The translations under genes and the position numbers were made by a program. Shown here one piece after another: positions 2,336-14,115 of a stretch of 16,274 bases of DNA (position 1 is the first letter of the stretch; the number at the start of each line of letters is the position of its first letter). The DNA comes from Paramicrosporidium saccamoebae KSL3 (taxonomy: Eukaryota > Fungi > Cryptomycota), in NCBI GenBank assembly GCA_002794465.1, contig MTSL01000082.1, forward strand, positions 1 through 16,274, written 5' to 3'. The notes under the pieces were generated by a model that saw only the letters and a program-made list of their open reading frames with translations, had not been told where the DNA came from and searched no databases.

Positions 2336-3643
2336 ATGACAGGACGTCCCCTTCCAGGTTTCATATACGATCCACAAACCAATAGATATTACCGAGAACA
2401 ACCGGCCTCACGCGTAACAACAGCATACGCTCAGATTGCAGCCAGAACACAGGAACGGACACTTGAGGCGGCCTTTGAGAGTGCCTATCAAAGCGTCTCG
2501 AGAAAGTATGTCTTTGATACCGCCACTTGGTCATTTACTGAATCCTTGAGTCAGAACTGTCGCCTGACAACTCAAAAGTTTCAAGATTTGCTACTGGGAA
2601 GAGTCCTTGGGCCCACAAATCTGCCAGTGGTTGTCCAGGCTGCCGCTGACCTTTATCCATCGACCGTCCCGGGTTCCGGACTCTTAAGGATTAGCGGAGG
2701 GTCTCGGATTAGAGGGGGAGCTTGGGCTAATGAAGGAGCCCGGATAAGCGAAACCAATTCGAGTAATGACAACAATCCGAGTAGTGAAGAGACTCAATTG
2801 TGCTCAGTCTCGTGGGATGGTCCTACTACGCGGGTTTTAGGTCGTCCGCTCCATGGATTTACTTTTGACGGTGTTATGGGCGCCTTTGTGTATCAACATC
2901 CATACGTGTCATTTGTGGCATCGACTGACCTGGGAGATGCAGTATATTTTGCCCATCTCTCTGAAAATCTTGAAGACTGCATCAGGTTCTATGGTATTGG
3001 GTCCCCCACCAATTCAAGATGTAGCCATCTCGCGCTATGTGATTCAGGAGAGGTTCTGGCCATGGTTGGAGAGCAAGACGTTTATTTCGTATCAACTACA
3101 AGTAACAATTGGTCTCCAGTGAAGCTGACCCCAACTGCCTCAAGGAACGAAGAGCTGGCTGCCAAAGCGGTTGGATTCCATTCAAACTCGCCCGACGGTC
3201 TATTGCTCTCCGTGGCAGGAAAGATTATGACCTTTAAGGACGGCCGACGTGCCGCTTCCTTTATTCTCCCCACTGGACGCGCTGCGTCTCAAATGTTCCC
3301 CGATGTGGAGAGGCAGACGCTATATGCCGAGACATTTCATAGTGAATTGTTCATGTTCGATTGGCGTTTTCCGAAAAAGTCCACGTTGGCCATCCAGTTG
3401 CCGGAAAGTCTAAAGTTCCATGGTCCCAAGTATAGCGTCGATTATGACCGTAATGTCATCTATTCGTCCTTTGGGCCGGCTGGAAAACTAGCAGCGTGGG
3501 ATGTGCGAAAGCTTTCCATGCCAATGAGTACTTTTTCCATTGGACGGCCGATTGGACAGCTCTGTCAGTCTCCAGACACGAAAAAGCCCATGGTCGTAAT
3601 TAGACCCTCACCGCCTCCACTACCTTTACCCATATCACAGTAA
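2336..3643 (+). CDS. DCAF4/WDR21-like WD40 protein (putative CUL4-DDB1 substrate receptor), 435 aa
   Basis: N-terminal LPGFIYDPQTNRYY resembles the DCAF4/WDR21 LPGF(Y/F)(Y/F)DPEKKRYF motif. C-terminal WDxR-like boxes (MFDWR, AWDVRK) are present. The WD repeats are divergent. Confidence 0.7.
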   Translation: MTGRPLPGFIYDPQTNRYYREQPASRVTTAYAQIAARTQERTLEAAFESAYQSVSRKYVFDTATWSFTESLSQNCRLTTQKFQDLLLGRVLGPTNLPVVVQAAADLYPSTVPGSGLLRISGGSRIRGGAWANEGARISETNSSNDNNPSSEETQLCSVSWDGPTTRVLGRPLHGFTFDGVMGAFVYQHPYVSFVASTDLGDAVYFAHLSENLEDCIRFYGIGSPTNSRCSHLALCDSGEVLAMVGEQDVYFVSTTSNNWSPVKLTPTASRNEELAAKAVGFHSNSPDGLLLSVAGKIMTFKDGRRAASFILPTGRAASQMFPDVERQTLYAETFHSELFMFDWRFPKKSTLAIQLPESLKFHGPKYSVDYDRNVIYSSFGPAGKLAAWDVRKLSMPMSTFSIGRPIGQLCQSPDTKKPMVVIRPSPPPLPLPISQ

Positions 3644-3692
3644 TGTACATTTATTAGACTGCCTACGGGTTAGAACTGTCCAATCTAGTGAA

Positions 3693-3791
3693 TGGATCAG
3701 CAGAAGCAGAGATCATTGCTGAGCGCCCTAGACACTAGGCATGTGTCCATTAAGCTACCAAGCTCATCCGCAAATTACACCATCATCTCCA
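3693..3791 (-). ncRNA. Box C/D snoRNA, U16(SNORD16)/snR87-like (guide for SSU rRNA Am436 yeast, Am484 human)
   Basis: C box AUGAUGG at 3786-3780. Guide GUAAUUUGCG (3778-3769) is complementary to conserved 18S CGCAAAUUAC. D' box AUGA at 3767-3764, D box CUGA at 3700-3697, terminal stem UGGA/UCCA, internal hairpin GGACAC/GUGUCU. The D'+5 rule selects the first A after CGC. Confidence 0.85.
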
Positions 3792-3844
3792 GTAGGATCA
3801 TACCATTCAGAAACTATAGATTAGAACCATTCAATACAGGGATG

Positions 3845-3919
3845 GGCTCAGAGAATTGTAGTTTCCTAACATGGGAGTTTCTAGTTTCATAGTCTCCTCA
3901 CTGCCCTCCATCATCATAC
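3845..3919 (-). ncRNA. Candidate box C/D snoRNA, target unresolved
   Basis: Perfect C box AUGAUGA at 3917-3911 and D box CUGA at 3851-3848. Possible C' box GUGAGGA. Weak terminal stem GGU/GCC. The D box sits 34 nt from the 3' splice site, as in the neighbouring snoRNA. Confidence 0.6.
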
Positions 3920-3983
3920 CTCTTATTTCTTTCCAGACGACACGTCGTGGTTGCGGTCTAAGAATTAGTAGAGTTCGCGATAA

Positions 3984-4070
3984 GCCCTCAGAGATCTTGG
4001 TGATAAGTTGTATGCATCAGCGACCCTGTCATAGGCCGTCAGAAGCGCGGATAAGATATAATCATTGGGC
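3984..4070 (-). ncRNA. Box C/D snoRNA, U24/snR24-like (guide for LSU rRNA Cm1437, yeast numbering)
   Basis: C box AUGAUUA at 4065-4059, D box CUGA at 3991-3988, terminal stem GCCC/GGGC. The guide CACCAAGAUCU before the D box is complementary to conserved LSU AGAUCUUGGUG, and the D+5 rule selects the C of GAUC. Confidence 0.85.
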
Positions 4071-4166
4071 AGCACCACTTACCTTTGCGGAACAAATTTT
4101 AGTTGACCGGGGATTTCGATCCTTTTAAAGGCAGCCGGTGATTGGTTAGGGAGAAGAGTTTGTGGG

Positions 4167-6040
4167 ATGCTATTTGGGACATTGTGGACGCTGTGGAGGG
4201 TGCTAGTGTCCCTTCCTGGCTTCCTAGCCGGCGGTAGGACGAGTGACGACATTAATGGATAGTGCTGTTTAGCGTGGGACTGGGCGGAATAGCAGTGTTG
4301 GCATACCTGTGGATATTTTGTACGGGGCCGCCATGCGGGATCCCGGAACCAGAGGAGGAAGAGGAGATTCGCAAAAAAACCATTGCCGGATGGGAACTGC
4401 CGTCCTCTGCAGAACACCATGAGGTACCCTTGGGAGAAGACTGAATGTAGGCGTATCGCTGCGGTTGGGTGTGTTTGCACATTGATTATTGCGATCGGCC
4501 ACCCGTCGATCTGGCACTGCTACAAAAGCTCAAGAATTCGCGACGAAACCGGCCAAGCAATGTGTATTTTCTAGTGCTAAAACACAACAGTCTCTTTCTC
4601 TATGAGAGTGAGGAACAGTTGCATTGTGCGGGCGTGGCAGTGATTGAGGGCTGTAAAATTGATCTATATCCACATACACTTTTGCTAGACGAGATATACA
4701 AGAAGGATTTTCCATTGCGGATTGTCAGCAATGGGGAAGCGCTATATGCAAACCGCTCGACAATATATCTATGGACGGCGAGCGCCAGCGAAAAGGAAGA
4801 CTGGTTGTTTGCACTCCGTCAGGCCGCAACAACAGCATCTGTAGCTATTACAGATCGGGCGGCAACACCCTATCTGCCTCAGAGCGATCCCAAATTGACA
4901 GATGCCATTTTCATGGAACGACTTAATAGATATGTCCGTGCACCGACAATGGACAAGTCGAGTCAATGGATTAATGCAATCATGGGCCGGCTATTTTTCA
5001 ACATGTTCCGGTCAAATGATTTAGAACGTTTCTTTCGGAAAAAATTTGAGCGCAAGGCGGCCACAATGCCAAAGCCCTTTTTCTTGGGGGATTTGGTGCT
5101 CAAGTCAGTGTTGGCCGGTCAATCCATGCCCATGTTTTCGCGGGGACAGCTGCATTCAGTGACAAATCAGGGCGAGCTGCTGGTTTCAGTAGATGTGCTA
5201 TATCCGGGCGGGTTTCGCATGCAAATTGAGACGGAAATCAAGTGGGACATTCCCCGGGTTAAAACGATCATTGTGCCTATTGTCATGTCCATCCATGTCC
5301 GCCGATTGGCCGGAAGGGCGTTGATCCGCATCAAGCCGCCTCCAAGTGACCGTCTTTGGTTGGGATTCTATGCACCGCCACAGCTGGAGGTGGACATTGA
5401 ACCGGTGGTGTCGGCCAAGGCCATTACATGGTCAGTGATCAAGACAGCCATGATGAAGCACATGCAAGACACAATGGCCGAGTTTGTAGTACTGCCCAAT
5501 ATGGACGATTTTAACATTCCGCCCCTCATAATTGGCGATTGTTATGGAGGGGAGAAACCCTTTGAGTTGGACTATATTCCTCCATCACTAATGTCAGAGA
5601 CGCAGAAACACGATCTGACGGCGCAGGGAATCTCCACAATGCGTTCCAGTCGAGGCCATTCTCCCGAGCAATTGGAAGGCATTTTCCGGGAACGCGGGTT
5701 GCTGTCGGGTAGTCACAGTCTGAGTGATTTGTCATTGGATGTGGATTTGGCAATGGATCCACTGACTTCGCAGTCATCCTCTCGCCAAGGTCTCTATGAT
5801 GAGGCGCGCAAGAGCGATCTACTAGCACAGGAGAAGAATGCAGATTCCTTTACCACGGCATCACCAGTGGACAATAGCTCGTCGGCCAACTCTTCACCCA
5901 CACGGACCACAAAAGAGGTGATTAGCAGTGTTCGACGATCCGTTAGCACTTTTTTCCGTACTCGTCATGTGACATTATTTTCGCGTGATCCTCCTGATGG
6001 GACATTGGCGGAGCACCTCAAGACGGAACATGTTGATTAA
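4167..6040 (+). CDS. NVJ2: Nvj2/TEX2-like membrane-contact-site protein (N-terminal TM anchor, PH-like domain, SMP lipid-transfer domain); exons 4167-4233, 4263-4423, 4451-6040; about 605 aa
   Basis: Spliced N-terminus MLFGTLWTLWRVLVSLPGFLAGVLFSVGLGGIAVLAYLWIF (TM segment). PH features GWVCL...YFLVLKHNSLFLYESEEQ...SEKEDWLFAL. SMP features WINAIMGRLF...RLWLGFYAPPQLEVDIEPVVS. Confidence 0.85.
4234..4262 (+). other. NVJ2 intron 1, 29 nt
   Basis: GTAGGA...ATTAATGGATAG. Supplies an ATG to the otherwise ATG-less TM exon. Confidence 0.8.
4424..4450 (+). other. NVJ2 intron 2, 27 nt
   Basis: GTACCC...CTGAATGTAG. Removes the in-frame TGA and joins the 4469 ORF frame. Confidence 0.85.
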
Positions 6041-6348
6041 ACAACCAATATATGCGTGATACATAGTGCGTAGTATTTAGTATGTGGTATATGGTGTGTG
6101 ATATATCGTATAAAAGGCAACCCAACTATACCAATGTACTATTGGTCAATGGCAATACATTTACTAACACTTATTATCAGCTTGTGTCTACTATTAATGG
6201 ACGCACCCTCCTAACTGTTAGGCTAATATCGTTGAGCATATAAACTAATAAATCATTCTCGCGCGTTAACGTGTATTAGCACCGCTTTTGTCCTCACACC
6301 AAAAGTAAATTCCTTATTGGTAGGTTAAGAATAAATAATTTGCATAGA

Positions 6349-8961
6349 ATGGCAACACTCCAGCTAGAAGCAACAGTGATGAACGAAATAGAACAGTACA
6401 TGCTAGAATGCAATCATCCAAAGTTGGAGCGGACGGCACGACGTCAGCGTCGGGCTAGGACATTGTCAGACGGTACGTTTGTGGGTGAGCGCTCATTTTA
6501 GCAATGGAACACTTTTTCATGGCGGAATGCGAGTTCCAGTCACGCCTCTTGAGCGCGGAACTGGACTTGGCAGAAGATGAGATGGAGGTGCCCAAGTTTG
6601 CTACCTCGTTGCTGGAAAAGGCTGTGCATGGCGTGCAAAGGGGCATCAAGGAAGGAAGCGGCGTTGAAAAGCTGGTAAACCATGAAACGCAATGGCTTAA
6701 TGGCGTAGTATAATTACTGTCTTCTGGGAAAGTTGCTAGTGTTCCAGGGAAAATACCAGGCGGCATTAGAGCAGGCCTTTCAGTACATTCCGGGAGAGGA
6801 GTTGTTGGGACTGTTCCGCTTGACAGACACAGAGGAGACAATCCGGGGGCCCACATTGGCTCAGATTGTGGGACTACAGACAAGTTATTGTAAGGGAGTG
6901 GCAATGGAAATGACAGGTCGGGCACGGGAGGCATTGGTGCCGTACTCTGATGTGTCAGACTTTTGTCGACGGTTTCCAGTGCCCATGGCGCTCAAGACAC
7001 GCGGATTAGCCCATTTTGTGGGGATGGCAATGTACCGCTACGGGATGCTGTGTTCCACCCTGACAGCAGATCCACGACCATTGCGGACGGCATTTGGAAA
7101 TGGCGGAACGACCTCTACCGGAACAATCCGCGGAAGATTGCTGTATGATGCGGCGGTGGCATTACGCATGTTTCTTGCATTTATGCCGTCCGCATATGGA
7201 ACAACACGTCATGCTGCTGCATTGATCCGCTACGTTGAAGCATTAGAGGGTCGATTCCGCGGCTCCATCTACCGAAACACCTTTGATCCTGAACAGTATA
7301 CTTTTACCCAGCAAACTGCAGAACGCTTCAGTCCCGAGACGATTGCCGAAGACGTAGTGTACTGCACTCAATTGCTAGAAAGTCTTCAGCCATTGCAGCC
7401 AGCTTCACGACATGATGCGCAGGCAGGCTCAGCCTCTGGACGGGTGCGCGGTGCATTGGCACGGCTTGCCCGTCACGGTGCCACTGAATCATTAGTGCGA
7501 ATGGCCAAAGCGTTGTTTTCACGATACGCCGCTGAGGCGTCCACGTACGGACGACTGTTGCTGGCGTGTGCCGCCGCCCGGAGACACGACGAGGCGACGC
7601 AGGCCGGCGAAATCTACGTGGCCTTGGGTGGACGAGAGCCATCAGTGCTACTGGTACTCATCAAATCATTGCTGCTCTTCCCCTCCAAGGCTCCTCTGGT
7701 GGTTGCATTGCTTGAACGTCATTCGACCCTATTGCCCACTTTCAGTCCGTTACTACAGATGCGCGGATTGGCCTTTCTCTCTCTGCAACGGAATGAAGAA
7801 GCAGTTGCTGCATTGGAGGCCGCTGTGGAGATTGATGACACTGATCCACAGGCTCATCTTATATTGGCTTTGGCCCATTTTGCTGCGGGAAATTGTCGGA
7901 TGGCTGAGCAGGCAGTAAAGTTGTCGCTTTCTATTGAGGAAAACCAACCATGTGCCTGGCTGCTATTTGCTGCCATCAAGTCAGCCCAGAAAGACTTTGA
8001 TACGTGTCTGTCCCTCTGCAACACGTTTCTGGAGAATTGCACCGTCTCCTTTGTGCCGATGGCGCTGCTCAAGACGGCTGTGCTCTGTTATTTGGGATTG
8101 CTGGAGGAGGCGGCTGGTGTAGTTGAATCGCTGATTGGCACCTGCACTGAACCCTCTGGTCCCGTCTTTGATCGTGACGGAATCCTAAGCGACGACGTCG
8201 AATCCGTTCCCAAGTTGGACCCCGCCCGCTTTCGAGCTCGTTTCTATCCCTCGGGCGAATCATCCACCACTGATTCCACCACGGTGGTAGTCTATCCCGC
8301 CCAGCGATTGGGACTGACAATGACCTCGTACAAAGAGGCCTTTCCCGATAGGGCGAATCAGGTCTTGGCCAGTAAGCTCACCCGAAGCGAACTCTTTCCC
8401 GAGGCCGTACTGCCTGCAAGCGATGTGATTGACTATTTGCGCACGCTTAGTATCTTATCAGCCTCTCACTCTGTGCTGCTTGCTCAACAGCTATGGTGTA
8501 CGTTGGGCGAGATCCGTATGGTCCAAAGAAAGCTCAAACTTGCAGAACTATGTGAACATGAGGCATTTGTTCTGAATGAACTTGATGTGGGTACATATGT
8601 CCTCAAGGGCCACATCCAGCTGGCTCTTGATCGCCATTCCATTGCACTCCAATGCTTCCAGTTGGGTTTGCAAATGGATCCGCGCAATATCGATTGTCTC
8701 CTCGGCTGTGCCCAATGCTATCTGCATATTGAGTCGCCCAACCAATTACATTTGGCCCTTCACATGGCCACCAAGGCTATGGAAGTTGATCCTACCAATA
8801 TCCCAGCCCTCTCCCTCTGTGCCGATCTGTCTCGAAAACTGAACCTCGATCGACGTGCTGGAGAATTGTATGAGCGTGCCATGGTCTGCGAGGAGACTGA
8901 TTCCATATTCCCCATGCAAAGCATTCTTCGTCTAATAACTGTGTCTCTGTCCGCGTATTAA
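6349..8961 (+). CDS. YPP1: YPP1/TTC7-like TPR scaffold of the PI 4-kinase (Stt4/PI4KA) complex; exons 6349-6472, 6502-6674, 6709-8961; about 849 aa
   Basis: Multiple TPRs. CLLGKLLVFQGKYQAA, DPQAHLILAL, AWLLFAAIKSAQKDF and LWCTLGEIRM...AELCEHEAFVL correspond to TTC7/Ypp1 blocks such as AWHLLALLxSAQK. Confidence 0.78.
6473..6501 (+). other. YPP1 intron 1, 29 nt
   Basis: GTACGT...CTCATTTTAG, phase 1, in-frame join to the 6504 ORF. Confidence 0.85.
6675..6708 (+). other. YPP1 intron 2, 34 nt
   Basis: GTAAAC...CTTAATGGCGTAG. Preserves the LLGKL TPR helix. A 28-nt alternative (6705-6732) is also frame-compatible. Confidence 0.68.
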
Positions 8962-9138: not shown

Positions 9139-10209
9139 ATGCCACCAAAGGCAGCACAGCAGCAGAGTTCCAAAAAGTCCGAGGCCAAGGCAAAGGCCAA
9201 GACGATTGAGGACAAAACATTCGGTCTAAAGAATAAGAACAAATCGGCCAAGGTTGGAAAGTACATTCAGCAGGTCGAGACCCAGGTAAAGACGGGTGGA
9301 AAACGACACGATCCCGATGCCGAGGCACGGGCTGCATTGAAGGAGCGCAAGCGTGCCGAAGAAGAGAAGAAGGCTGAAATTGCTGCCCTCTTCAAACCGG
9401 TCGTGCAGCAAAAGGTTCCGCCCGGTGTCGACCCCAAGACTGTCGTCTGTTCCTATTTCAAGAGTGGCCAATGCCAAAAGGGAGATAAATGCAAGTTCTC
9501 CCACGACCTCACTGTCGAGCGGAAGGCAGCCAAGATTAATTTGTATGAGGATCGACGCGCTGAGGACGGCACGGAGGATGGCGAAGAACGCGAAACCATG
9601 CAGGACTGGGACCAGAACAAGCTGGAACAGGTAGTCGAACGGAAGCACCAAAAGGGAGCCAAGACTACCACGGACATTGTCTGCAAACATTTCCTGGATG
9701 CCATTGAAAAACAGGCCTATGGCTGGTTCTGGGAGTGTCCCAACGGCGGCGATTCCTGCAAATACCGCCATGCTCTACCGCCTGGTTTTGTGCTCAAATC
9801 TGCCAAGAAGGAGCGTCCCTCGGAACAGGAAGAGCTGTCTCTCGAAGAATTTCTCGAGACGGAACGGTATCGCATTGAGAAAAAGACTCCCGTCACTGCC
9901 GAATCCTTCCTCAAATGGAAGGCCGATCGGAAAGCCAAACAAGAGTTGGAGGAGCGACAGCGTGAAAAGGAGAAAGAGTCGCAGATCAAAGCAGGCAAGA
10001 TGTTGCATGCCAGTGGAAGAGATCTGTTCATGTACAATCCCGAAATGTTCATGGTTGATGACGACGAAGAGGCCATGGACGTGGATTACACTCGCCGCGA
10101 AGATGACGAAATGGAGGAGATTGCCAGTGAGGTGGTGGATGAATTGGTGGATGAAGACGCCTTTTTGGATGAAGATTTGGAGAATCTTGACATTGACGAG
10201 TTGGAGTAG
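9139..10209 (+). CDS. TMA46: Tma46/ZC3H15 (DFRP1) CCCH zinc-finger translation-associated protein, 356 aa
   Basis: True start MPPK at ATG 9139. Contains IEDKTFGLKNKNKS, QKVPPGVDPKTVVCSYFKSGQCQKGDKCKFSHDL, VCKHFLDAIE..YGWFWECPNGGDSCKYRHALPPG and an acidic tail. Confidence 0.96.
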   Translation: MPPKAAQQQSSKKSEAKAKAKTIEDKTFGLKNKNKSAKVGKYIQQVETQVKTGGKRHDPDAEARAALKERKRAEEEKKAEIAALFKPVVQQKVPPGVDPKTVVCSYFKSGQCQKGDKCKFSHDLTVERKAAKINLYEDRRAEDGTEDGEERETMQDWDQNKLEQVVERKHQKGAKTTTDIVCKHFLDAIEKQAYGWFWECPNGGDSCKYRHALPPGFVLKSAKKERPSEQEELSLEEFLETERYRIEKKTPVTAESFLKWKADRKAKQELEERQREKEKESQIKAGKMLHASGRDLFMYNPEMFMVDDDEEAMDVDYTRREDDEMEEIASEVVDELVDEDAFLDEDLENLDIDELE

Positions 10210-10841: not shown

Positions 10842-11951
10842 TCACGCTGCAGTACGCTTATCCTTCTTGGTGACTCGCACTGGTGCATCCAACAACTCTA
10901 GCAATTCCTTGCTCTTGACGGCCACGGCCGGCTTGACCGTCTGAATGTCGTATTTGTAGTCGGTAATCTTGAGAGGACCAGCGGGGAGCAAGACGGTGGT
11001 AAACATGACACGGGCCGTGAGGGCATCTTTCTTGTCCTCCAGCACCTCATAGGCATTGGTGACGCCATGTTGGGTGCATTCCAACAGTCCCATGCGCGCC
11101 TTGGTACTGTCCTCCAGTTGACGGATATGGAAGGCCATTGTGCCGAATCGACTACTCGCCTCACTGACCACCGCACGGGAAGTCTTGAGACGCAGTGAAT
11201 AAGTGTCACCGGTGCGACAGTAAATGTTTGTGCGGAGATTATCGTTGGGCTCGACCTTTCCCTCAGCCGACGAAATGGCCACATCCACCACAAAAACGTC
11301 ATAATTGGAAAAGACACAAGGCTGTACCATCTTGGCCTGCTGGTCTGACGGATTCACAATGATCATTTTGTCATGGGCCAAACGATCCTTGCTGACAGAG
11401 TGGGATATCATTCCCTCCACGAACGACACGTTCAGCTCACCCGTCAGCTTCTTTAGCGTTGCTGCCGTTTCCGCGCTGCTCTTACCATCGCGGATGAGAC
11501 GCAACGCTGCCTCTGCTGTCAGATGCGCCGCATGCACCAGGTCCGCCGCCAAACCAGTGGCCGGCTTATCCTTAGTGGCGCCTACTACCACAGAGCTTGC
11601 CACCAAGGCAGGGAAGCCGTCAATGTGCGCCCCCAACTCCACCTTGACCAAATCGCCCTCCTTCAATTGCACGTCGCTCTCGACGTCCATGGGGGAAAAG
11701 TGGCACAGCGTATTGTTCACTGACACACAGCAAGGAAAGGAAATTCCCTTAGACACGCCACGGTACACCTTTGTGGCCAACTGCGTCAATTCCTCGTCAG
11801 TGCGCACACAGATGGACAACGCCGAGGCTCCAGGACTAACCAAGGCCAATGCATAGGCCAAGGCCTTGTTGGCGAGCTCAGCTGCCGCCTGATACTTGTT
11901 AAGCACCTCCGACTGCGCTGGTGAATGTTCGCTCATGACTTCTGCCGGCAT
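10842..11951 (-). CDS. PA2G4: PA2G4/EBP1/Cdb4-like inactive peptidase-M24-fold ribosome-associated protein, 369 aa
   Basis: VLNKYQAAAELANKAL, KGISFPCCVSVNNTLCHFSP, VKVELGAHIDGF, LRLKTSRAVVSE...FGTMAF...KARMGLLEC, basic C-terminus. Confidence 0.92.
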   Translation of the reverse strand: MPAEVMSEHSPAQSEVLNKYQAAAELANKALAYALALVSPGASALSICVRTDEELTQLATKVYRGVSKGISFPCCVSVNNTLCHFSPMDVESDVQLKEGDLVKVELGAHIDGFPALVASSVVVGATKDKPATGLAADLVHAAHLTAEAALRLIRDGKSSAETAATLKKLTGELNVSFVEGMISHSVSKDRLAHDKMIIVNPSDQQAKMVQPCVFSNYDVFVVDVAISSAEGKVEPNDNLRTNIYCRTGDTYSLRLKTSRAVVSEASSRFGTMAFHIRQLEDSTKARMGLLECTQHGVTNAYEVLEDKKDALTARVMFTTVLLPAGPLKITDYKYDIQTVKPAVAVKSKELLELLDAPVRVTKKDKRTAA

Positions 11952-12188: not shown

Positions 12189-13127
12189 TTATGGATCTAC
12201 AATTATAGGCGCATACTCTCCACTATCGGCATCAGTTGTTAGGTCCCATCCAAATTTGGACATGATGAACGCAGAGAATGCAGATGCATGAGCCTGTAAA
12301 ACGGCAGTGTCCATGCAGTCTTGACAGAGAGCCTGGAACCATTGGAAGAGCCGATTGTCTCCAGCTATGCCGGTGCATTCAAAAAAGTCATCGGGACATT
12401 CCTGCAATTGGCCCTGGAGAATATTTAGGAATTCCATGTACAGTGGAGGATCCTCTTTGATCAGGGCGGAACATTGACACAACAGGGCGACAATGGCCCT
12501 CCATTGTTCAAAACCTTCGAAATTGTGACCCAATACCAATAAGACAAAGCAGAGTTGCAGTTCGGCCAATAGATCCATAGGACGGATCGAAAGGGTGCGG
12601 ATGACTGGCGTCCGGTCCAGTCCCGTCGGCCGGATTTCTCGTTCTGTAGGGATTTTCGTGAAATGCAAATCTATCGTCTCGTGGGAGGAATGATAGCTTG
12701 TGGCCATGGGGGTTATGGTCCCGCCTGGAACGATGCGGTTCAAAGTTTGTAGATTAAGCAGATTTGTCCAGTCCTGAAACCTCTGCATCTCCATCCTCTC
12801 CCACGGGAAGGGGCCCAGAAACCGATCCAACTCGTAAATGCTAAATTCCGGCTCGCCCATTGGCCTAAGCTGCTCGGTGGCGATATCCCACTGAAAGTAA
12901 AGTATTTCTTTCGGTTTGAAGAAGCGAAAAAAGCCTGTCAACGCTCCATTCCCCCCGCACTGGTAGTAGACAAAATGCAGACCTGGTGGAATCATCTTGA
13001 TCCCCTTGAACAACGGACCCACGGTCCAACTGACGCCGTCAATGCCCACTTCAAAATTCAGGGGAACCCCCATCATTAGTACAAAGGCACCCTCCTCAAA
13101 GCGTCTTGTAGCATCCTGCGGGTCCAT
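12189..13127 (-). CDS. AAR2: AAR2 U5 snRNP assembly factor, 312 aa
   Basis: ATG at 13127 (the track used an upstream GTG). EVGIDGVSWTVGPLFKGIKMIPPGLHFVY...GFF...LDRFLGPFP...LLAELQLCFVLLVLGHNFEGFEQWRAIVALLC...QLQECPDDFF. Confidence 0.95.
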   Translation of the reverse strand: MDPQDATRRFEEGAFVLMMGVPLNFEVGIDGVSWTVGPLFKGIKMIPPGLHFVYYQCGGNGALTGFFRFFKPKEILYFQWDIATEQLRPMGEPEFSIYELDRFLGPFPWERMEMQRFQDWTNLLNLQTLNRIVPGGTITPMATSYHSSHETIDLHFTKIPTEREIRPTGLDRTPVIRTLSIRPMDLLAELQLCFVLLVLGHNFEGFEQWRAIVALLCQCSALIKEDPPLYMEFLNILQGQLQECPDDFFECTGIAGDNRLFQWFQALCQDCMDTAVLQAHASAFSAFIMSKFGWDLTTDADSGEYAPIIVDP

Positions 13128-13141
13128 CCACACCAGGGCTC

Positions 13142-14115
13142 ATGTCCAGTCGTCCTGATGTCGTAGCCATGCTCAAGAGCGATGTTACCACCAAAATATG
13201 TGCTCCGATGGTGCGTTATTCGCGGTATCTATTGCAGAGAGTATAGTAAACAGATGTAGACTGCCGTTCAGACTGCTGGTTGCCGAATACGGCGCGGACG
13301 TTGTATATACGCCCATGATTATGGCCGATTCCTTCATTCACTCTTCCCTTGCCCGACACCACGAACTCCAACTCACCTGTCCTGCTCCACCCACTGTCGT
13401 CCAGTTTGCTGCACACACTCCCCATGAACTGGCCACGGCTGTGCAGTTGGTGGCACCGTATGTGGATGGCGTAGACTTGAATTGTGGCTGTCCACAAGGC
13501 TGGGCTGCCAAAGAAGGCATTGGGGCTGTCCTTATGCGGGATGCTGACTTGGTGTATCAGATGGTAAGACAGGCCGTCTCTGTGGCAGGACAGACTCCTG
13601 TGGCCGTAAAGATGCGCATCTTTGATGACGAGAAAAAGACAGTAGAATTGGCAAGACGACTAGAGACAGCGGGAGCTTCTTGGCTAACCGTTCATGGTCG
13701 GACACGACATCAGAAATCCAGCGAATCTGTCAACTATGCCATGGTCAAACTCATTAAACAGTCTGTCGCCGTCCCGGTGGTAGCCAACGGTGATGCATTC
13801 ACTCTAAATGATACAAAGGAGATTGCTCAATGCACCGGTGCGGATGGTGTTATGAGTGCCCGGGGAATCCTTGAAAATCCCGCCTTGTTCTCGGGCTCCG
13901 CCAAGACGCCCTGGGAGTGCGTAGACCGCTTCTGTGAATTGTCTGTGCAATATGGCAGCGCAAGTTCCATCTTCCATCATCATCTTTCTAAAATGACTGC
14001 CTCCGTCCTATCTTCTGGTGATCATCGAGTCCTCAACAGTCTCGCTAATGCTTGTATCCCCAGCATGATAGACTTTCTTGAACAGGTGCGTCCACAATAC
14101 AATCGGCTTTCTTAA
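13142..14115 (+). CDS. DUS4: tRNA-dihydrouridine(20a/20b) synthase DUS4-like; exons 13142-13224 and 13260-14115; about 312 aa
   Basis: Splicing a 35-nt intron restores the DUS4 signature KICAPMVRYSRLPFRLLV. Also YTPM, VDLNCGCPQ, TVHGRT, VANGD and DGVMSARGILENP. Confidence 0.92.
13225..13259 (+). other. DUS4 intron, 35 nt
   Basis: GTATCT...AAACAGATGTAG. Joins APMVRYSR to LPFR. Confidence 0.9.

Follow-up and report, generated by a model that had tools for sequence, protein, structure and literature searches.

A compact multi-intron gene of Paramicrosporidium saccamoebae is a probable non-coding host of three intronic box C/D snoRNAs

The analysis of contig MTSL01000082.1 of Paramicrosporidium saccamoebae KSL3 (assembly GCA_002794465.1), a stretch of 16,274 nt that is called the window here and along the whole of which all positions are counted, very likely reveals a gene transcribed by RNA polymerase II from the minus strand, from about 4104 to 3630, that would serve solely to deliver three box C/D snoRNAs (s1, s2 and s3) from its introns. 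The predicted host gene occupies about 480 bp in total, and its joined exons would form an RNA of about 100 nt. At the sequence level, the locus displays the characters of a UHG-type host gene, with at least two introns holding one snoRNA each between canonical splice signals, both in the window and in one related genome (L001), and with a spliced RNA that lacks a meaningful reading frame and whose exons are less conserved than the snoRNAs. The relatives used for comparison throughout are contigs of uncultured fungi, found by following homologues of the SMP-domain protein encoded next to the locus. The analysis shows directly how the locus is built, that the snoRNAs and their synteny are conserved, that RNA stems covary, and that the guides are complementary to sites mapped as methylated in other species; that the gene is transcribed and spliced, how the snoRNAs are processed, whether they accumulate as small RNAs, and methylation in the host organism are predictions from sequence.

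The gene was parsed on the minus strand into a series of very short exons and longer introns. Exon 1 (4083..4104, about 22 nt, with a putative 5' end) is without an ATG and ends AAAG/GTAAGT at the exon/intron boundary. Intron 1 (3958..4082, 125 nt, GTAAGT ... TACTAAT-TCT-TAG) is followed by a 38-nt non-coding exon 2 (3920..3957), by intron 2 (3814..3919, 106 nt, GTATGA ... TTCTAAT-CTA-TAG), by the 10-nt micro-exon TTTCTGAATG as exon 3 (3804..3813), and by intron 3 (3663..3803, 141 nt, GTATGA ... TTCTAAC-CCG-TAG), while the terminal exon (3630..3662, with a putative 3' end) carries AATAAA at 3655-3650. These intron lengths, like all other figures that a preliminary description of this DNA had given for 3650-4130 on the minus strand, were reproduced; its view that the 38-nt and 10-nt exons are devoid of coding capacity and followed by AATAAA agrees with our frame check, in which the longest frame in the joined exons is ATG-GCA-GTC-TAA. 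It had also placed one C/D unit in each intron, and three conserved box C/D snoRNAs were indeed located, one per predicted intron. The last base of the D box (3988, 3848 and 3697) lies 30, 34 and 34 nt from the acceptor G, as had been described, and the branch A is equally placed in all three introns, 7 nt from the acceptor G.

The splice signals at the snoRNA introns exceed chance expectation. Donors of the GTAAGT or GTATGA type lie 12-13 nt upstream of each snoRNA, and the branch and acceptor pattern CTAAY-N3-TAG lies 26-31 nt downstream. Across both strands of the 16.3-kb window, this pattern has five copies where about one is expected, three of them being those found 26-31 nt after the snoRNAs, and the donor pattern GTA[ATG]G[TA] has 24 copies in 32.5 kb, including the three that precede the snoRNAs by 12-13 nt. 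The same signals fit the genome's own intron grammar, as given by two verified tiny introns on the plus strand in the neighbouring SMP-domain gene. One of these (4424-4450, 27 nt) restores the conserved ...YRCGW... frame, and the second (4234-4262) is 29 nt long; both use similar branch and acceptor spacing, and both are kept, in more diverged form, in a relative with a 92% identical protein. The N-terminus of the SMP-domain protein is cut off by prokaryote-style gene calling. A candidate 34-nt intron at 6675-6708 (plus strand, GTAAAC...CTTAATGGCGTAG) would link an upstream frame to the TPR-protein ORF 6733-8961, which suggests that the TPR-protein gene also has a tiny 5' intron. With lengths of 27 and 29 nt and a candidate of 34 nt, the earlier estimate of only about 27-35 nt for protein-gene introns is borne out.

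The sole conserved CCAAT/TATA block sits upstream of s1 and recurs in L004, L005, L006, L009, and L014. On the minus strand, it comprises a CCAAT box at 4141..4145 (CCAATCA is also present at the same relative place in L006, L009, and L014) and a TATA-like element TTTAAAAGG at 4121..4129 (found as (C/A)TTAAAAGG or ATAAAAGG in L004, L005, L009, and L014), both with a putative promoter role, together with a CCC(C/T)GGTCAA(C) block, here CCCCGGTCAAC, at 4102..4112, which is conserved in all five of these relatives. This last block follows the TATA-like element by about 25 nt and is the probable transcription start region, and it is from the conserved promoter-like arrangement of CCAAT, TATA-like element and CCCCGGTCAAC that an exon 1 of about 22 nt is predicted.

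The host gene is closely packed between its neighbours. The SMP-domain (NVJ2-like) gene starts on the plus strand at ATG 4167 and therefore stands head-to-head with the host gene, the two lying within about 65 nt, so that the two promoters must overlap. At the other end, ORF 2336-3643 (plus strand, 435 aa), called 'DCAF4' in the preliminary description, gave no match to Pfam at E <= 0.01, which leaves that name unconfirmed; its stop codon at 3641-3643 converges on the host gene and lies 7 nt from the AATAAA of the opposite strand, and the 3' ends of the two therefore probably overlap. Farther along the window, the AT-rich intergenic gap 6040-6450 (GC 0.40) has several splice-like motifs as well as a perfect palindrome, CCTAACTGTTAGG, near 6209-6221, and no RNA family was found in it by Rfam. 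The window also encodes a conserved tRNA-dihydrouridine synthase, whose best named relatives are 47-50% identical (chytrids, Mucoromycota, Zoopagomycota, and also Saitoella) and whose closer matches are metagenomic or Logan proteins.

The assignment of s1, s2 and s3 to the box C/D class is drawn from their boxes, stems and antisense elements. The Rfam check proposed earlier returned only sub-threshold matches, with none at the gathering score anywhere in the window, and an E-value scan of the whole window with Rfam revealed no further snoRNAs. All three RNAs carry CUGA D boxes and terminal stems of 3-4 bp; their C boxes are variants that keep both GA dinucleotides or match the family consensus, and the boxes are invariant in 7-8 genomes. 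Directly upstream of D or D', antisense elements 10 nt long or more were found for the s1 D, s1 D' and s3 D' guides on fungal rRNAs and for the s2 D guide on Arabidopsis 25S, and each of the four positions that they select has been mapped as an Nm site in at least one eukaryote (PMC8053127, PMC8817022). We predict s1, s2 and s3 to be guides for fibrillarin-dependent 2'-O-methylation at LSU C1437, LSU G2236, the Um144 equivalent and SSU A436.

Targets were sought on the complete rDNA units of Ogataea polymorpha (L012) and Diversispora epigaea (L013). The rRNA genes were reached by searching with a spurious antisense-LSU ORF and delimited with Rfam, and sites published for yeast and Arabidopsis served to calibrate the numbering. 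The shuffled-guide control was scored with a G-U penalty, the version with unlimited G-U pairs being uninformative. The partial unit L011 and the Rhizophagus irregularis rDNA (L010) were left out of the scan; in L010, runs of N at 9657-9972, 11050-11639, and 12403-13827 (2.3 kb in total) cover much of the LSU.

The first snoRNA, s1 (3984..4070 on the minus strand, 87 nt, terminal stem GCCC/GGGC), is a double guide of U24 and U36a type. From its 5' end, it presents a non-canonical C box AUGAUUA (4065-4059), the D' guide UUAUCCGCGCUU (4054-4043) followed by the D' box CUGA (4042-4039), a C' box (4019-4014), and the D guide UCACCAAGAUCU (4006-3992) followed by the D box CUGA (3991-3988). It was found in 8 relatives with both guides invariant, and the hairpin between D' and C' covaries (RNAalifold). 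Against Rfam, it scores 30.9 bits with SNORD24 (RF00069), for which the gathering score is 41, and its 5' half scores 25.7 bits with plant snoU36a (RF01302), again below the gathering score. On the LSU, the D guide forms 13-14 Watson-Crick pairs and 1-2 G-U pairs, a result equalled by 0 of 100 shuffled guides, and its position 5 selects C1437, the U24 site. The D' guide forms 12 bp with LSU AAGCGCGGGUAA and its position 5 falls on G2236 (yeast numbering), which corresponds to Arabidopsis Gm2237, a mapped Nm assigned to U36; the portion of the yeast methylation table available to us holds no entry for this site. Yeast A2220, at one point considered as the D' target, was dropped, as numbering calibrated on the Ogataea LSU gives G2236, equal to Arabidopsis G2237.

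The comparison with known families reveals that s1 shares one half with each of two of them. Like U24 (SNORD24, RF00069; yeast snR24), it has a D guide that matches the family D guide and selects LSU C1437; unlike U24, whose D' guide aims at A1449/G1450, it carries a plant U36a-type D' guide for G2236 and is thus U24-like at one site only. With plant U36a (RF01302) and Arabidopsis U36, its 5' half shares the unusual C box UGAUUA, the guide UUAUCCGCGCUU and the CUGA, with D+5 selecting the Gm2237 equivalent, whereas the 3' half of U36a is an A2221 guide and that of s1 an unrelated U24 guide. The preliminary identification as a U24 for LSU Cm1437 is therefore retained for the D guide, which reaches C1437 on real rRNA, but not for the molecule as a whole, which is not a plain U24 given its plant-U36a-type guide for G2236.

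The middle unit, s2, is a single guide with a 63-nt core at 3844..3906 on the minus strand, possibly reaching 3841-3912 with an extended stem (63-72 nt). It has a non-canonical C box GUGAGGA (3901-3895), an 11-nt D guide ACUACAAUUCU (3862-3852), the D box CUGA (3851-3848) and the terminal stem GGGC/GCCC. Its Rfam matches are weak. The guide and boxes are invariant in 7 genomes, and L009 carries a single compensating change (GC to AU) in the terminal stem, beside a U-U mismatch. A canonical-looking ATGATGA at the start of intron 2 (3917-3911, minus strand), overlapping the donor GTATGA, was considered as the C box of s2 and rejected; it is absent from the relatives and is probably coincidental.

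Positions 2-11 of the s2 guide pair perfectly (10 bp) with G141-U150 of Arabidopsis 25S, with position 5 on U144, which is a mapped Nm (MethScore of about 0.9) assigned to SnoR36. On the Arabidopsis sequence, s2 selects the same uridine as SnoR36, and the two are likened by target only. In the rRNA of Ogataea and Diversispora, the best pairing of the D guide is 8 bp, with none above chance; the fungal near-match that comes closest, at U143 of the Diversispora LSU, involves the same nucleotide, and this stretch of LSU domain I varies moderately. A plausible target of s2 is then the LSU domain-I uridine equivalent to Arabidopsis Um144, as read on Arabidopsis 25S. This target predicts that the host LSU domain I reads GAAUUGUAGU; with an Ogataea- or Diversispora-like sequence at that place, s2 would be an orphan or have another target. 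The putative D' guide of s2 has no rRNA target above chance and is not claimed as functional. No equivalent of s2 was found in the Neurospora snoRNA sequence list, and a literature search by its guide sequence gave nothing relevant.

The third snoRNA, s3 (3694..3790 on the minus strand, 97 nt, terminal stem GGA/UCC), resembles snR87/U16. It presents a non-canonical C box AUGAUGG (3786-3780), the D' guide GUAAUUUGCG (paired part 3778-3769) followed by the D' box AUGA (3767-3764), an internal hairpin that includes 3747-3743 paired with 3735-3731, and the D box CUGA (3700-3697). The D' guide forms 10 bp with CGCAAAUUAC and selects SSU A436, the snR87/U16 site (PMC5824354, PMC8817022), so that the U16/snR87 guide for SSU Am436 named in the preliminary description does reach A436 on real rRNA, in accordance with the published site tables (PMC8817022, PMC8053127). 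The internal stem covaries, with compensatory changes at 9 of 27 predicted pairs, all within that stem (RNAalifold). The D' guide GUAAUUUGCG for A436, the covarying internal hairpin and a C box whose last base is not A are shared with snR87/U16 (SNORD16, RF00138; fungal family CD_10), from which s3 differs by its Rfam score of 21.5 bits (E = 0.3), below the gathering score of 45. The snR87 family targets 18S-436 via D' in all fungal lineages except Microsporidia and has been traced to the root of the fungi (PMC5824354). For the D guide of s3, there was no rRNA target above chance, and it is not claimed as functional.

It is the comparison with relatives that shows decisively that the snoRNAs are real. 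The order s1-s2-s3 is found in the same gap between the same flanking genes in six related genomes (L001, L003, L004, L005, L006/L007, and L009). The synteny for which a test had been proposed earlier is thereby established, and the three-snoRNA combination, which had been described as unfamiliar from other species, proves to be shared by these six. Identity to the window is 77-82% for the snoRNA bodies, with boxes and guide elements invariant among the relatives, but only 27-57% for the exons, intron flanks and promoter-side sequence; for the exons alone the range is 31-54%, and exon 2, with a mean of 33%, is variable in length. A metagenome scan with an invariant 22-mer of s3 reached a single contig, L009, which is genomic and not a transcript. 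In the close relative L014, the contig reaches only s1 and ends just after intron 1, and it is therefore silent on s2 and s3. L008 keeps s1 together with an s3-like unit and lacks s2. The s3-like C/D RNA of this AT-rich relative (L008:4040-4151, minus strand) has the same boxes and stem, with the D' guide GAAAAGUUGCG in place of GUAAUUUGCG; either a switch of target or decay could account for the change.

The intron structure, in turn, varies between relatives. Donor and branch/acceptor signals equivalent to those of intron 1 flank s1 in L001, L003, L008, L009, and L014, and motifs resembling AATAAA come after the final acceptor in L001, L003, and L009. The three-intron parse is kept in L001 with a middle exon of 17 nt; in L003, the middle exon measures 20 nt and the donors are weak (GTAGCA, GTACCA). 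In the s2-s3 spacer of L005 (L005:4209-4352, minus strand), the AG that comes first after the branch is immediately followed by the next GT, giving a zero-length exon on the simplest parse, and in L009 (L009:172-214, minus strand) there is neither donor nor acceptor between s2 and s3, and no exon, with both snoRNAs intact. The small internal exon thus measures 9-20 nt in relatives as parsed, is possibly zero once, or is absent. As it is variable or missing, one snoRNA per intron, the arrangement noted in the preliminary description, is not a constant of the locus.

Taken together, we propose that transcription would start some 25 nt past a conserved promoter with CCAAT and TATA-like elements, shared head-to-head with the SMP-domain (NVJ2-like) gene, and that splicing would then remove the three introns. 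Each lariat would be debranched and trimmed back by exonucleases to the snoRNP formed on the C/D boxes and terminal stem, and the spliced exon RNA of about 100 nt, without a reading frame, would probably be discarded. Counting against this explanation are the non-canonical C boxes, although relatives conserve them, the failure of any Rfam family to reach its gathering score, and a 10-nt internal exon, which is sterically awkward for recognising both flanking splice sites at once.

Variation among the relatives also bears on a different route, in which a single polycistronic precursor is not spliced at all and, in the style of S. cerevisiae and plant clusters, the snoRNAs are released by RNase III-type cuts in the spacers and exonuclease trimming, the splice-like motifs being relics or idle. 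With the absence of splice signals around and between s2 and s3 in L009, where both snoRNAs stay intact, and with the poor donors of L003, part of the cluster is evidently processable without one intron per snoRNA. The loss of splicing signals around fungal snoRNAs, termed 'de-intronization', is moreover documented (PMC3596301, citing Mitrovich 2010). We nevertheless regard this route as unlikely in P. saccamoebae, given that the window introns have strong donors and equally spaced CTAAY-N3-TAG, accounting for three of the five such motifs in 32.5 kb, and that L001 retains the three-intron parse.

The very short micro-exon, whose size and presence differ among relatives, would also suit a mixed mode, in which intron 1 is spliced while the 10-nt exon is mostly skipped, leaving s2 and s3 in one 257-nt lariat (3919..3663) to be parted by an endonuclease or by stepwise (recursive) splicing. 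There are precedents, namely juxtaposed introns with lost exons and stepwise splicing in fungal snoRNA clusters (PMC3596301) and alternative exon skipping in Neurospora snoRNA hosts (PMC2780460). Both splice sites around the 10-nt exon are, however, of consensus quality in the window, and we judge such a mode very improbable there. Finally, a protein-coding region, or three independent snoRNA genes with their own promoters, is hardly credible: mechanical ORFs do overlap the region (3871-4128, plus strand; 4079-4480, minus strand), but they have no Pfam match, only the snoRNA bodies are conserved while indels occur elsewhere, and the 53-77 nt spacers between the snoRNAs hold no promoter-like element and are too short for separate promoters, the one conserved CCAAT/TATA block standing upstream of s1.

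The removal of three introns with one snoRNA each, which we continue to favour for the window, places the locus beside host genes of other fungi. UHG-like non-coding multi-intron snoRNA host genes are experimentally established in Neurospora (PMC2780460), and such genes, some with internal exons that are tiny or missing, have been catalogued in Ascomycota, Basidiomycota, and Zygomycota (PMC3596301). With these hosts (Neurospora crassa clusters I-V; Candida, Euascomycetes, Archiascomycetes, Basidiomycota, and Zygomycota), the window locus shares short introns with one box C/D snoRNA each and canonical splice signals, exons that are short, poorly conserved, without an ORF, and tiny or lost, and an intron presence that varies between relatives. 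It differs from them in its s1-s2-s3 content, which is not among the clusters named in the consulted passages of the two papers, in its compactness, with about 480 bp, a 10-nt internal exon and ordinary introns of 27-34 nt, and in being predicted from sequence.

The mammalian UHG and GAS5 genes are alike in that it is their introns that yield the product, while the exons join into a non-coding RNA; they are unlike in that there is no homology and the window introns are far shorter. Vertebrate intronic snoRNAs sit much farther from the branch point than the roughly 20 nt seen in the window.

Neither the type of host gene nor its layout is new, both being well known in fungi (PMC2780460, PMC3596301), and no concept is changed by the locus. 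Non-coding snoRNA hosts that have several introns and tiny or lost exons have been described before in a wide range of fungi, and the window locus adds a member. What sets it apart is the hybrid U36a/U24 double guide, the plant-type Um144 guide and a very compact host among introns of about 30 nt. Guide-element recombination between snoRNAs is itself a documented theme (PMC2780460).

For genome annotation, the locus adds three RNA genes, predicted to be functional, and one non-coding host gene where protein-centred annotation leaves a gap or spurious small ORFs; the earlier expectation that such annotation would miss it is illustrated by the gene calls on related contigs. It also extends the fungal host pattern of one snoRNA per intron to a lineage with unusually small introns, and it offers four testable rRNA methylation sites, of which the Um144 and Gm2237 equivalents are absent from the yeast site lists consulted. 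More tentatively, and with somewhat less than even confidence, we suggest that this lineage keeps two rRNA guides that, in the sources consulted, are assigned only in plants (LSU Um144 of SnoR36 type and LSU Gm2237 of U36 type), the second of them fused with the U24 guide for C1437 into a new double guide, and that the locus is an extreme minimal host gene. If this is true, the Um144 and Gm2237 sites would predate the plant-fungus split and would have been lost at least in the yeast lineage, and the locus would provide a natural test of the smallest exon that still separates two snoRNA-releasing introns.
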